Assembly (NCBI GenBank): GCA_002269645.1
Contig: NIVC01002946.1
Coordinates: 62,001-126,000 of the forward strand
DNA from: Macrostomum lignano
Lineage: Eukaryota
Length of the DNA: 64,000 nucleotides
Direction of reading: 5' to 3'
Shown here: positions 9,805 to 20,820 of the stretch, one piece after another
Layout: each line of letters begins with the position of its first letter
Numbering within the stretch: position 1 is the stretch's first letter
The notes under the pieces: generated by a model
What the model was told of the DNA's origin: nothing
What the model saw: the letters and a program-made list of their open reading frames with translations, nothing else
The model's database searches: none
Translations under genes and position numbers: made by a program

Positions 9805-12800
9805 TCAGGTGTCGTTTTCATAGGTGTCAGTTTGCCTGCTGGCTTGGGACTGGACAGCTGCCTCAACCTGCATCTCCGCATAGCTGCCACTGGGCCGAGC
9901 GCCGCTCCCAGCCGATGCGCCAGTCGACTGTCGCTGACGACGTGGCATGGGTGCCGGCGGCAGCGAGGATGTGGCTGGGACTGCCGGTTGCTGCGGCGGC
10001 GGCGGTGCTGGCACCGTGGCGACTGAGCCAGGCGGCTGCGACCGAATAGTATCCAGCTCGAAGCTAGGGACCTGCGGCGGCTGAGGTTGCTGCGACGGCG
10101 GCTGCTTCCTGGAATGTTGAGAAGGGAAAATTCCTATCGCGCTTTTTTCTAGTAGTTTCTCTGTGTTCCTACTGACAGTAGGGTAAAAAAAGAAGTGTTT
10201 GATTTTCTTTAAAGGGTATTTCGATCAATGCCGAAATCGCACCGACGAAGAGCCTGAGATGTACTTTTGTCAAGACGACAGTTAAACCGTAGCCATGCAG
10301 CCACATGTACAGTAGAACGGCAAGTAGTCATGCCATTCCACTGACATGTACTCGTACATTGTAAGTATGCAGACACGCTTTCTCATTGTCAAGGCAGTGT
10401 ACACAATCTCTGTGGTGCAACTTGAGCAGCCTTGGACCTCACCTGAGCTTCTGGCACTTCTGCCTCATCCAGAGCCAGATGTCGTTGGAGAAGTAGCCAG
10501 CGCAGATTCCGGCGGGCAGGAGCAGCAGAAGCAGCAGGAGCGCCAGGTGCGCATTCGATGCCGCAGGCGGCGGGCTGACTGCCGGCGTCAGGTTGACGCA
10601 GACGACAGACTCCGCGTCGCTGCAGTCGGCTCGCTGCCTGCAGGCCGCCTGAGCTGCCGGCTTCTCCTTGGCTTGAACTGAGTCCAGACTCCGCTGCATC
10701 TGCAGGCCTGCGGCTGCCGAATACTCGCCGATCTGCGCCAGTTCGTGGTGGGGCTTTAGAAAAAAATAATTAGTCCAATTTTCCTAAACTTTTCTCGTTT
10801 GATCACTCTTCAGTTTGTTCCAAGTTCTTCTTTGACTGTTTCAAGGCTGCTCCGAAAATACCCCTTTGCTTTCTACCGAAATTCCCTCTCAATTCTTGCA
10901 AGATTCTTTCCGAAATTCCCTCTCGATTTTTGCAAGATTCTTTCCGAAATTTCCTCTCGATTTTTGCAATATTCTTTCCGAAATTCCCTCTCGATTTTTG
11001 CAATATTCTTTCCGAAATTCCCTCTCGATTTTTGCAATATTCTTTCCGAAATTCCCTCTCGATTTTTGCAATATTCTTTCCGAAATTCCCTCTCGATTTT
11101 TGCAATATTCTTTCCGAAATTCCCTCTCGATTTTTGCAATATTCTTTCCGAAATTCCCTCTCGATTTTTGCAAGATTCTTTCCGAAATTCCCTCTCGATT
11201 TTTGCAATATTCTTTCCGAAATTCCCTCTCGATTTTTTGCAAGATTCTTTCCGAAATTCCCTCTTGATTCTGGCAAGATTCTTTCCGAAATTCCCTCTCG
11301 ACTTTTGCAAGATTCTTTCCGAAATTCCCTCTCGATTTTTTGCAAGATTCTTTCCGAAATTCCCTCTTGATTCTGGCAAGATTCTTTCCGAAATTCCCTC
11401 TCGATTCTGGCAAGATTCTTTCTGAAATTCCCTCTCGACTTTTGCAATATTCTTTCCGAAATTCCCTCTCGATTTTTGCAAGATTCTTTCCGAAATTCCC
11501 TCTCGATTTTTTGCAAGATTCTTTTCGAAATTCCCTCTGGATTTTTGCAAGATTTTTTTCGAAATTCCCTCTCAATTTTTGCAAGATTTTTTCCAAAATT
11601 CCCTCTCGATTCTTGCAAGATTCTTTCCGAAATTCCCTCTCGATTCTGGCAAGATTCTTTCTGAAATTCCCTCTCGATTCTGGCAAGATTCTTTCCGAAA
11701 TTCCCTCTCGATTTTTGCAATATTCTTTCCGAAATTCCCTCTCGATTTTTTGCAAGATTCGTTCCGAAATTCCCTCTCGACTTTTGCAAGATTCTTTCCG
11801 AAATTCCCTCTCGATTTTTTGCAAGATTCGTTCCGAAATTCCCTCTCGATTTTTTGCAAGATTCTTTTCGAAATTCCCTCTCGATTTTTGCAAGATTTTT
11901 TTCGAAATTCCCTCTCGATTTTTGCAAGATTTTTTCCAAAATTCCCTCTCGATTTTTGCAAGATTCTTTCCGAAATTCCCTCTCGATTCTGGCAAGATTC
12001 TTTCCGAAATTCCCTCTCGATTCTGGCAAGATTCTTTCCGAAATTCCCTCTCGATTCTGGCAAGATTCTTTTCGAAATTCCCTCTCGATTTTTGAAAGAT
12101 TCTTTGCGAAATTCTCTCTCGATTTTTGCAAGATTTTTTCAAAAATTCCCTTTTGATTTTTGCAAGATTCTTTACGAAATTCCCTTTCAATTCTTGCAAG
12201 ATTCCTTTTGAAATTCCCTCGATTCTTCTAAGATTCTTCCAGTAATTCCGCTTTGATCCATCAAAGATTCGTTTTGATATTCCCTCGGGATTCCTTCCAG
12301 GATTGTTCAAATAATTTCCACAAATCCTTCTCAGCCTTCCCTCTACTTGGGAGATTTTCCCAAGGTAATCCATTGCAGGCAATTCATTCATCAAAAGAAG
12401 CCCGCCATCAGATTTATCAGCATTGGCTGTCGGGCCGTCACCTTCCGCCAGCCCTCGGCGCCGCTGCCGAACTGCAGGACGTTCAGCCGGTTCGACCCGG
12501 TCCGGTCGTCACCGATTGGCCGATAGTCGCCGAATCGCCGCGGCTTGGCCGACGGGCCTCCTTTGGCGTCGCCGAAAAGAATCCGGTTGCCGCGGGCCTT
12601 CATCGCCGCCCAGCTCGGATTCTGCAGCAGGGCGTCGCAAGCGGCCGTCGACGTCGCCGCTACGCAGACGTCCCCGACGGTGGCGAGGCCGCCAAGCAGC
12701 AGGGCGGCGGCAGCGTTGGCTGCCAGCGGCGCCCGGCTGTCCAGGAAGCCGAGGCCGGGCAGCTCGCCGGGCGAGGCCGGTCCGCAGGCGCCGACCGCAG

Positions 12801-18800: not shown

Positions 18801-20820
18801 CTCATGTTCATCCTACATACTGCTCATGTTCATCCTACATGCTGCTCATGTTCATCCTACATACTGCTCATGTTCATCCTACATGCTGCTCATGTTCATC
18901 CTACATACTGCTCATGTTCATCCTACATATTGCTCATGTTCATCCTACATACTGCTCGTGTTCACCCTACATGCTTACTCATATTCACCCTACATGCTGC
19001 TCATGTTCATCCTACATACTGCTCATGTTCATCCTACATACTGCTCATGTTCATCCTACATACTGCTCATGTTCACCCTACATGCTTACTCATGTTCACC
19101 CTACATGCTGCTCATGTTCATCCTACATACTGCTCATGTTCACCCTACATGCTGCTCATGTTCATCCTGCATACTGCTCATGTTCATCCTACATACTGCT
19201 CATTTTCATCCTACATACTGCTCATGTTCATCCTACATACTGCTCATGTTCATCCTACATACTGCTCATGTTCAACCTACATACTGCTCATGTTCATCCT
19301 ACATACTGCTCATGTTCATCCTACATGCTGCTCATGTTCACCCTACATGCTGCTCATGTTCATCCTGCATACTGCTCATGTTCATCCTACATACTGCTCA
19401 TTTTCATCCTACATACTGCTCATGTTCATCCTACATACTGCTCATGTTCATCCTACATACTGCTCATGTTCAACCTACATACTGCTCATGTTCATCCTAC
19501 ATACTGCTCATGTTCATCCTACATGCTGCTCATGTTCACCCTACATGCTGCTCATGTTCATCCTGCATACTGCTCATGTTCATCCTACATACTGCTCATG
19601 TTCAACCTACATACTGCTCATGTTCATCCTGCATACTGCTCATGTTCATCCTACATACTGCTCATGTTCATCCTACATGCTGCTCATGTTCACCCTACAT
19701 GCTGCTCATGTTCATCCTGCATACTGCTCATGTTCAACCTACATACTGCTCATGTTCAACCTACATACTGCTCATGTTCAACCTACATACTGCTCATGTT
19801 CATCCTACATACTGCTCATGTTCATCCTACATACTGCTCATGTTCATCCTACATGCTGCTCATGTTCACCCTACATGCTGCTCATGTTCACCCTACATGC
19901 TGCTCATGTTCATCCTATGCTACTCATGTTCACCCTACATGCTTACTCATGTTCACCTACATTCTGCTCATGGTCTTGATGACAAAGTAACTTTCAGAGT
20001 CGAGCATTGCAAAAGATTCGCAACACCTGCTGCTGCTCACCTCAGCCAAGTCGAACACCGACGGACCCGGCGTGAAGACAGCATCAGCCGAGCCTGACTC
20101 GAATGCCGTGGACATCGGCGCGTCCAGTCTGGACGGGACTGTGGCGAAGACCGGCTGGTTGAGGCGGCTGGTTGAGCCGAAGGACTCCATTGCCCTGCGG
20201 TACTGCAGCAGAAACTCCAGTTGGTATTCACTGTCCAAATTTGTGAAAACTGCAATGTGGCATTGGGGACTGGTGGTGGCAGGTGGCTCATTGTGAGTAA
20301 AATTCTCAACTTGTTCAGATTTTATTATAATTTAGCTATGCTTCTGCAACGGAAATGTACTCAAATCTGGTATGTACTCAGAAGCGTTTTGATGAAGATT
20401 ACTCAGCATCTTCAATTGCATGTCAAACCCCAGGACTTACCTGAACTCTTTGTCCATCTCTGCCGTTGCGCAGCCGCCACCTGCTCGGTAGACTGGCAAA
20501 CCTCAGCCTGGCAAGAGGCTGGAAATGAATGTCAAACATAAATAGATATTTTAGTGCAGTAAATAAGCAGCTGCAGCCCCACAGTTGACTTCGCCACGCG
20601 ACTTACCGCCGAACCAGCGCTGCAAAATGATATTGCTAAGAGCAGCATTAATCCGCGATGAGGCATCCCAGCTGCTGTTGCTGCTGCTGCAGTTTCTCCC
20701 TGTTAGAGTTGGCTGCTGTTTTGAGTTGGACAGAATGACCGCGCGAGCTGCGCAGCTGCTGGCATCTGCAGCCCAGCCGTGTCCGACCACGCTGGAGAGG
20801 ATTAAAACTATGGACAGCAT
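9805..20820 (-). CDS. Single-pass receptor with two tandem Venus-flytrap (class C GPCR/ANF-receptor-like) domains, ~1240 aa; exons 20820-20607, 20518-20441, 20249-20041, 18547-17987, 17165-16824, 15966-15583, 14630-14175, 13305-12442, 10753-10443, 10108-9805
   Basis: All nine introns are GT-AG with matching phases; CDS total 3723 nt. Signal peptide MLSIVLILSSVVGHGWA. VFT1 motif WQAAYQLVTGLNWTYIAVV. VFT2 motifs PGDYYIGVIAPVR, GYVIIDSC, GFVGALSSTSSMAAAELLKQFGLPLVSYGSTS..FARTVVTD, YIVVVFADTDYG. One hydrophobic helix [19 protein letters not shown], then a Pro/Gln/Ser-rich tail. Confidence 0.8.
10870..12250. repeat. 34/35-bp minisatellite in receptor intron 8
   Basis: Unit TTCCGAAATTCCCTCTCGATTTTTGCAAGATTCT; AAATTC at 10981 and 11015. 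Confidence 0.95.
13356..14100. repeat. 23-bp G-rich minisatellite in receptor intron 7
   Basis: Unit GAGTGTCAGGTAGGGGGAGGGTT. Confidence 0.95.
14641..15493. repeat. 24-bp minisatellite in receptor intron 6
   Basis: Unit CAGTGTCAGGGAGGGTGAATGGCT; it runs to within 10 bp of the acceptor at 14631-14632. Confidence 0.95.
16025..16230. repeat. 29-bp minisatellite in receptor intron 5
   Basis: Unit GGTCATTTAGGGTCACCAGCCTATTTCAA, about 6 copies. Confidence 0.9.
17262..17980. repeat. 14/15-bp C-rich minisatellite in receptor intron 4
   Basis: Unit CTACCCCTGCTTCC(C). Confidence 0.95.
18700..19965. repeat. 22-bp minisatellite in receptor intron 3
   Basis: Unit CATACTGCTCATGTTCATCCTA; CATGTT at 18781 and 18803. 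Confidence 0.95.

Follow-up and report, generated by a model that had tools for sequence, protein, structure and literature searches.

A predicted single-pass receptor with two tandem Venus flytraps in Macrostomum lignano and its unnamed relatives in Spiralia

We analysed a stretch of 64,000 nt from the flatworm Macrostomum lignano (positions 62,001 to 126,000 of contig NIVC01002946.1, assembly GCA_002269645.1, to which it is 100% identical), in the following referred to as the window. A gene on its minus strand (20820..9805) encodes a predicted receptor in which two Venus flytrap (VFT) domains are followed by a single transmembrane (TM) helix. The domain order is signal peptide, diverged VFT1, cysteine linker, VFT2 of the type present in class C G protein-coupled receptors (GPCRs), one TM helix and a tail, and we consider this two-VFT, one-TM, enzyme-free receptor architecture very probable. 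Judged by sequence comparison, the protein is a member of a distinct, unnamed family of single-pass tandem-VFT proteins, which has so far been found in Spiralia. The protein is already public as an unnamed database prediction, and enzyme-free single-pass VFT receptors are already known (NPR-C); it is the tandem arrangement of the VFTs that is new.

Stop-free stretches of the minus strand between positions 20820 and 9805 show similarity to ANF_receptor. The exon model was built from splice sites and phases, and a 78-nt exon was added to an initial nine-exon draft. All introns of the resulting ten-exon gene are GT-AG and the phases are consistent. Splicing yields a protein of 1202 aa that is identical to PAA54240.1 (UniRef A0A267DY58), for which the public label is "Receptor ligand binding region domain-containing protein". 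Residue numbers throughout refer to a variant of 1233 aa, which uses an upstream acceptor of exon 4 (position 18547). Hydropathy analysis pointed to a signal at the N-terminus and to a single strong TM segment (residues 1099-1117, Kyte-Doolittle value 2.41); the remaining peaks fall inside the VFT folds. Thirteen N-glycosylation sequons are present upstream of the TM segment. The cytoplasmic tail of 116 aa is of low complexity, rich in P, Q, S and A, and has no Pfam match. The Pfam scan of the whole draft matched ANF_receptor (PF01094) only, in two stretches (E 1.9e-28, the best at residues 614-821 in VFT2), and gave no 7tm_3, NCD3G, kinase or cyclase domain. Each VFT is followed by three cysteines at the place where a cysteine-rich domain would begin; those of the linker, C532-x3-C536-x2-C539, are invariant in the family alignments A2 and A3. 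A previous sequence-only reading of this DNA had proposed ten phase-consistent exons, over exactly the span of the annotated gene, a signal peptide, one TM helix, a short Cys linker and a low-complexity tail of about 115 aa, and expected two ANF_receptor matches in Pfam. All of these features were recovered here.

VFT2 comprises about residues 545-1060. The best sequence matches in the PDB were mGluR2, CaSR and T1R (E about 1e-14), and the PDB matches listed (60 of 97) were all class C GPCRs and none was an NPR. The AlphaFold2 (AF2) model of VFT2 reached a predicted local distance difference test score (pLDDT) of 80-92. In a Foldseek search this model matched the ectodomains of mGlu2/3 with E 1e-25, TM-scores of 0.74-0.86 and a root-mean-square deviation of about 4 Å. 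We concluded that VFT2 is unambiguously a class-C-type Venus flytrap, in agreement with its earlier description as clearly mGluR/CaSR-like.

The same reading had seen no seven-transmembrane (7TM) or cyclase domain in the receptor, and the Pfam result and the neighbouring gene both support this. A convergent multi-exon gene for 4-hydroxyphenylpyruvate dioxygenase (HPPD; 3100-7700, plus strand), recognised by Glyoxalase-fold Pfam matches and peptides, ends about 1.8 kb from the receptor stop, and therefore no room is left for downstream 7TM, kinase or cyclase exons. A 42-bp minisatellite is located between the receptor stop and the HPPD gene, and both lie within the 9.8 kb below the stop. A tblastn search with the receptor over the window detected no second copy and no further receptor exons. 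Missed downstream exons for a 7TM, kinase or cyclase domain were thus ruled out by the minisatellite, the HPPD gene and the tblastn result, and the receptor gene is intact and not truncated. A separate database model of 319 aa (P0010) differs by two substitutions and agrees with the window gene in its last three junctions and its stop.

VFT1 is much less clear, and "diverged" is too mild a word for it. On its own it reached only E 0.004 in Pfam, over one exon and below the family threshold, and a search against PDB sequences gave no match, either with the single sequence or with a profile of three flatworm paralogs. BLAST against its own VFT2 resulted in a weak match (E 0.001). The AF2 model of VFT1, based on a 16-sequence alignment, has a mean pLDDT of 53.7. 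Residues 193-346 were modelled as a confident beta-alpha-beta lobe, and a C-terminal hairpin was moderately confident (residues ~420-490 when VFT1 was modelled alone; strands 464-489 when the ectodomain was modelled). All top Foldseek matches of the VFT1 model were class C VFTs (E 1e-8 to 1e-9), at TM-scores of about 0.3. In hhalign, the flatworm VFT1 profile matched mollusc VFT1 with a probability of 96.7% and E 3e-10, compared with E 0.06 for mollusc VFT2, and the landmark residues W69, C79, W209, C241 and C374 are common to flatworm VFT1 and the family. Because of this profile-profile match and the common landmark residues, flatworm VFT1 appears to be a diverged descendant of a flytrap and may no longer function as one. 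The claim of a diverged VFT1 thus held for its descent and for one confident lobe; it did not hold for residues 1-192, which gave no confident fold.

An exhaustive HMMER protein search resulted in 1525 matches, with M. lignano proteins and some fused vertebrate models ranking first. Many further matches are proteins of 1000-1660 aa, to which VFT2 of the query aligns at about residues 550-950. The architecture was examined in 70 of the matches and in the window protein. Exactly one strong TM segment was present in 44 proteins (window protein counted), mostly at residues ~1000-1070 (range 861-1106). Two VFT regions were found in 42 of these 44, the first matching best with the VFT1 hidden Markov model and the second with the VFT2 model; the two exceptions are flatworm proteins with a VFT1 too diverged for plain hmmsearch. 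This collinearity supports the earlier proposal of a distinct receptor class. Pfam analysis of six members (mollusc, brachiopod and Logan-contig sequences) gave two ANF_receptor matches each and nothing else, with no 7tm_3, NCD3G or kinase. Profiles of flatworm and mollusc VFT2 matched with E 2.5e-56 in hhalign. Since each VFT is orthologous domain by domain in hhalign, the comparison implies that the tandem arrangement is older than the split of flatworms, molluscs and brachiopods.

Flatworm and lophotrochozoan proteins, in which the sequence-only reading had suggested looking for the same architecture, did contain it. Besides M. lignano, the named members come from bivalves (Dreissena, Saccostrea, Solemya, Potamilus, Pecten, Mactra, Sinanodonta), gastropods (Aplysia, Babylonia, Patella, Batillaria) and the brachiopod Lingula, which has two genes. 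Every named member is labelled uncharacterised or hypothetical. Of the two M. lignano paralogs, P0008 (PAA84059.1) is 35% identical to the window protein over residues 197-1100 and has the same layout of signal peptide, VFT1, Cys linker, VFT2, TM segment and short tail, with other genes following closely. The other, P0157 (PAA66742.1, Mlig007438g1), ends like the window protein. It carries about 300 aa of fn3-like repeats before VFT1 (weak Pfam fn3 match, E 6e-4), which may genuinely extend the N-terminus or stem from a fused gene model. A further member, from another species, is encoded on a Logan contig of 3742 nt (SRR6474597) as a complete, uninterrupted coding sequence with in-frame stops upstream, and this contig is most simply an assembled mRNA.

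Some matches were left uncounted. Giant proteins with 5-10 VFTs (P0011, P0016 and others), considered as a possible "poly-VFT" class, turned out to be Polypterus "CASR, partial" models, and a match with two VFTs and a 7TM domain (P0097) is a fish V2R. Both are most simply explained as fused tandem receptor genes. In two other matches, P0099 and P0101, a pair of VFT-type regions precedes 6-7 hydrophobic segments; these proteins may be true class C GPCRs with a double VFT or may result from fused tandem genes.

We compared the window protein with known VFT receptors. With class C GPCRs (mGluR, CaSR, T1R, GPRC6A) it has in common a VFT2 of the same ANF_receptor family, by sequence and predicted fold, the retained Ser/Thr/Tyr/acidic pocket residues and the cysteines at the start of a cysteine-rich domain. 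It differs from them by its two tandem VFTs and its single TM helix, by the lack of 7tm_3 (PF00003) and by having only three Cys per VFT instead of the complete nine-cysteine domain NCD3G. Receptor guanylyl cyclases differ by the kinase-homology and guanylate cyclase domains that follow their TM segment. NPR-C (NPR3) is similar in having an ANF_receptor-type VFT, one TM segment and a short enzyme-free tail. However, NPR-C has one VFT, of the natriuretic peptide receptor subtype, and binds its peptide across the dimer, whereas the window protein has two VFTs of the mGluR/CaSR subtype and a Cys linker. Venus kinase receptors (VKR) are single-pass proteins with an extracellular VFT and were first found in a platyhelminth (PMC4026697, PMC3703292), but neither the window protein nor its paralogs gave a kinase match in Pfam. 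The sequence-only reading had placed VFT domains normally on a 7TM, on a TM segment with kinase-homology and cyclase domains, or on an ionotropic glutamate receptor. NPR-C and VKR were missing from this list, so that a single-pass VFT receptor as such is known, and only the tandem arrangement stands as new.

The bacterial kinases BvgS and EvgS have VFTs of another subfamily, that of periplasmic binding proteins, and also contain, further along, a PAS domain and a histidine kinase. Like the window protein, they carry two tandem VFTs outside the membrane and then one TM segment (PMC4352136, PMC5573083). In view of their bacterial origin, the other VFT subfamily and the PAS and kinase domains, the likeness would be convergence and not homology. 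In the literature found on the locus tags and on tandem or atypical VFT receptors, with most subscription journals outside its coverage, BvgS and EvgS were the only tandem-VFT proteins described. The eukaryotic family is undescribed there, in agreement with the earlier reading, which had named no characterised example.

Uncharacterised spiralian proteins were also compared. Lingula XP_013382567.1, Dreissena XP_052237846.1, Saccostrea XP_062604070.1 and Aplysia XP_005105500.2, for example, are collinear with the window protein over their full extent (signal peptide, VFT1, CxnCxxC, VFT2, Cys stalk, one TM segment and tail). Their VFT1 is well preserved with a ligand signature and most of them have a juxtamembrane YxxP, whereas in the window protein VFT1 is degenerate and YxxP is absent.

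VFT domains sense glutamate, calcium, taste substances, GABA and natriuretic peptides. Each known way of connecting them to the cell, by a 7TM, a cyclase, a kinase or an ion channel, corresponds to a major class of receptors. A conserved family in which two serial flytraps sit on one helix without an enzyme would represent a further way and would show that the class C ectodomain has been re-used without a 7TM. Its members would be candidates for chemosensory or nutrient receptors in molluscs, in brachiopods and in M. lignano, a regenerating model flatworm for which RNA interference and transgenesis are available. The degenerate flatworm VFT1 would be a natural experiment on the role of a flytrap after ligand binding stops.

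To characterise the ligand pocket, the alignment of the window protein with mGluR2 was projected on the family alignment. At the positions equivalent to S145, A166, T168, Y216 and D295 of mGluR2, the residues in VFT2 of the window protein are S, G, T, Y and E. CaSR likewise has Glu at the last of these positions. The Ser, Thr, Tyr and acidic positions, which hold the alpha-amino-acid moiety in mGluR and CaSR, are retained in 15-18 of the 19 aligned family VFT2s. VFT2, in which Ser, Thr, Tyr and Glu of the pocket are retained, is therefore likely to sense an amino-acid-like ligand. In mollusc and brachiopod VFT1s, Ser, Tyr and Glu are retained for the most part. In all four flatworm VFT1s, Gly occupies both the Tyr and the Glu column, and these domains have therefore probably lost ligand binding.

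The tails of the family vary greatly in length and sequence, many comprising 300-600 aa, and could not be aligned apart from one motif. YxxP was found within 60 residues of the TM segment in 26 of the 44 members, at a distance of 12-40 residues (YITP, YLNP, YLTP, YDEP, YAEP, YDVP; EYDVP in paralog P0008). A shuffle control, which ignores the relatedness of the sequences, gave an expectation of 5.8, and none of 500 shuffles reached 26. The conserved position of YxxP nevertheless speaks for a function. Phosphorylated YxxP is the type of site that is read by SH2 domains of the Crk/Nck class. The tail of the window protein contains PxxP-rich stretches, YAEM and a C-terminal YEND.

As an overall explanation, to which we give an even chance, the intact gene would encode a type I single-pass receptor of the tandem-VFT family in which VFT2 acts as sensor and the tail as docking site. 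Our proposal for the mechanism, a non-catalytic and probably dimeric receptor for a small ligand that signals via docking motifs or a partner, is a tentative one. The ectodomain of the family would derive from class C GPCRs, a VFT together with the first cysteines of the cysteine-rich domain having undergone tandem duplication, and the 7TM would have given way to one TM helix and a non-catalytic tail. The membrane-proximal VFT2 would be the working sensor, probably closing on an amino acid or another small ligand of this kind, while the distal VFT1 of flatworms would probably act as a structural, dimerising or regulatory module. Rearrangement of the VFT dimer upon ligand binding would be transmitted by the single helix to the enzyme-free docking tail. 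Docking would occur at the juxtamembrane YxxP, a phosphotyrosine-type site, in most members and at the proline-rich PxxP stretches, YAEM and YEND in the window protein, and the proteins recruited there would be cytosolic kinases, adaptors or a signalling partner. A more far-reaching version, which we regard as doubtful, would make this a third coupling route for class C VFTs beside the 7TM and the VKR kinase: the dimer rearrangement would expose YxxP (here the proline-rich and YxxM/YxN motifs), cytosolic tyrosine kinases would phosphorylate it, and adaptors of the Crk/Nck type would read it. The origin of the family would then lie no later than the last ancestor common to flatworms, molluscs and brachiopods, and its members would be amino-acid or nutrient sensors.

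Chemosensor, co-receptor and decoy had been suggested as roles, and the receptor may have any of these. A decoy or clearance receptor would bind a soluble ligand and remove or buffer it by endocytosis without signalling, as first described for NPR-C. The single TM segment and the short tail without enzyme fit this explanation, YAEM fits the YxxPhi endocytic sorting pattern, and the high variability of the tails would be expected if little specific signalling depended on them. However, 26 of 44 members have YxxP at a conserved position, which points to a specific interaction in the cytoplasm. The Pro at +3 is also at odds with YxxPhi, and many tails are longer than a sorting signal needs. The VFTs are also of the mGluR/CaSR type and not of the NPR type, as seen from the exclusively class C matches among the 60 of 97 listed from the PDB. 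We regard a decoy as unlikely.

To a similar degree it is improbable that the protein is an auxiliary subunit or co-receptor, whose VFTs would heterodimerise with a 7TM class C receptor or another receptor and modulate ligand sensitivity or trafficking without being the transducer. Class C VFTs are obligate dimers and often heterodimers, as in GABA-B1/B2 and the T1Rs. The predicted structure of VFT2 is very close to mGlu2/3, and the degenerate VFT1 could be a pure interaction module. On the other side, the conserved cytoplasmic YxxP suggests that the family has an output of its own.

An annotation artefact or dying gene, that is a truncated class C GPCR or receptor kinase or an unexpressed pseudogene, would agree with the degenerate VFT1, with a second genomic copy that has a 1-nt exon-8 gap and a truncated public model, and with a transcript look-up that matched only the genome contig, but is very improbable in view of the 3.7-kb open reading frame (ORF) intact over ten exons with canonical splice sites, the convergent HPPD gene, the tblastn result and the same ending of TM segment and short tail in two paralogs, 44 family proteins and an intron-free coding sequence.

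Several points weigh against the proposed tandem-VFT docking receptor, in addition to the relatedness ignored by the shuffle control. The look-up for transcripts of the window gene, made with the exact protein, returned only the genome contig. The taxonomic range is based on 20 named proteins. In VFT1, residues 1-192 and 347-462 were modelled at pLDDT <50, and the presence of genuine mollusc VFT1s in the AF2 alignments biases the result in favour of a VFT. For the docking-platform step, the window protein itself is the weakest case: YxxP is absent from its low-complexity tail, and YAEM, YEND and PxxP are short motifs that may occur by chance. Finally, the ligand, the partner and the phosphorylation are putative for all members of the family.

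The features of the receptor gene are listed in Table 1.

Table 1. Exons of the receptor gene and a candidate polyadenylation signal (window positions).
Feature	Position	Strand	Description
Exon 1	20607..20820	-	ATG at 20820, signal peptide (20820-20770), start of VFT1; donor GCG|gtaagt, phase 1; from splice reading and hydropathy
Exon 2	20441..20518	-	78 nt, phase 1 to phase 1; family-conserved Cys79 (EVCQS)
Exon 3	20041..20249	-	Part of VFT1 lobe 1; AF2 confidence low
Exon 4	17987..18547	-	Confident Rossmann-like lobe of VFT1; acceptor 18454 in the public model, 18547 upstream
Exon 5	16824..17165	-	C-terminal part of VFT1; conserved C374/C383
Exon 6	15583..15966	-	End of VFT1; Cys linker C532-x3-C536-x2-C539 (15777-15754); VFT2 from 15738
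Exon 7	14175..14630	-	VFT2 lobe 1; conserved Ser and Thr of the amino-acid-binding signature (GALSSTSS, SYGSTS); best Pfam ANF_receptor match
Exon 8	12442..13305	-	VFT2 lobe 2 and return to lobe 1 (Tyr of DTDYG, Glu of TTEAVG)
Exon 9	10443..10732	-	End of VFT2; C-x5-C-x7-C stalk (10642-10598); single TM helix (10549-10487); basic juxtamembrane stretch; donor CAG|gtgagg, phase 2
Exon 10	9805..10108	-	Pro/Gln-rich cytoplasmic tail; YAEM (9882-9871), YEND (9822-9811); stop TGA 9807-9805
Candidate polyadenylation signal AATAAA	9414..9419	-	385 nt downstream of the stop; consensus match only

The cysteine encoded by exon 2 is conserved in at least 90% of the sequences of family alignment A3. For exon 4, the pyrimidine tract of the alternative acceptor at 18547 is better than that of the annotated acceptor at 18454, and use of 18547 adds 31 in-frame residues, PKLCAYGGSKVLVARWRTHRTVLLTTNHTWQ (18547-18455). 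These residues (PKLCAYGG...HTWQ) align with the matching stretch of VFT2 (LVSYGSTSTVL...) and include T, R and L positions that do not vary among three flatworm paralogs. A helix of the first AF2 model (H187-206), which runs into AAYQLVTGL, starts inside them. Because the residues align with the paralogs and with VFT2, PAA54240.1 is probably incomplete at this point or corresponds to an alternative isoform.

Contig NIVC01002690.1 carries the gene a second time (L001 16911-17773, corresponding to 13305-12442 of the window). As exons and intron flanks are alike ~100% identical, the two copies are allelic or assembly duplicates. The second copy has a 1-nt gap in exon 8, which leads to the truncated public model PAA55901.1 (931 aa). 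This gap may reflect a true frameshift allele or an error in the long-read assembly.

The window is eukaryotic DNA with introns full of repeats. Minisatellite arrays are located at 8763-9354, 10876-12249, 13348-14099, 14641-15495, 16030-16217, 17265-17980 and 18702-19972, that is in the 3' flank and in six of the nine receptor introns. Each array is different, with periods of 42, 34, 23, 24, 29, 14 and 22 bp, 6-58 copies and 91-97% matches, and the arrays give rise to long spurious ORFs on both strands. Long artificial ORFs also result from (CTGT)n-like arrays at 33165-33939 and 47830-48447. An ORF of 723 aa on the plus strand (21900-24071), 1.1 kb upstream of the receptor start codon, resembles reverse transcriptase and RNase H and appeared by eye to be a fragment of a retrotransposon without long terminal repeats. 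Further along the plus strand, charged coiled-coil ORFs at 35195-44063 resemble a gene of the MAP7/ensconsin type, and exons at 53538-57544 are, by eye only, similar to the propionyl-CoA carboxylase beta chain or a carboxyl transferase.

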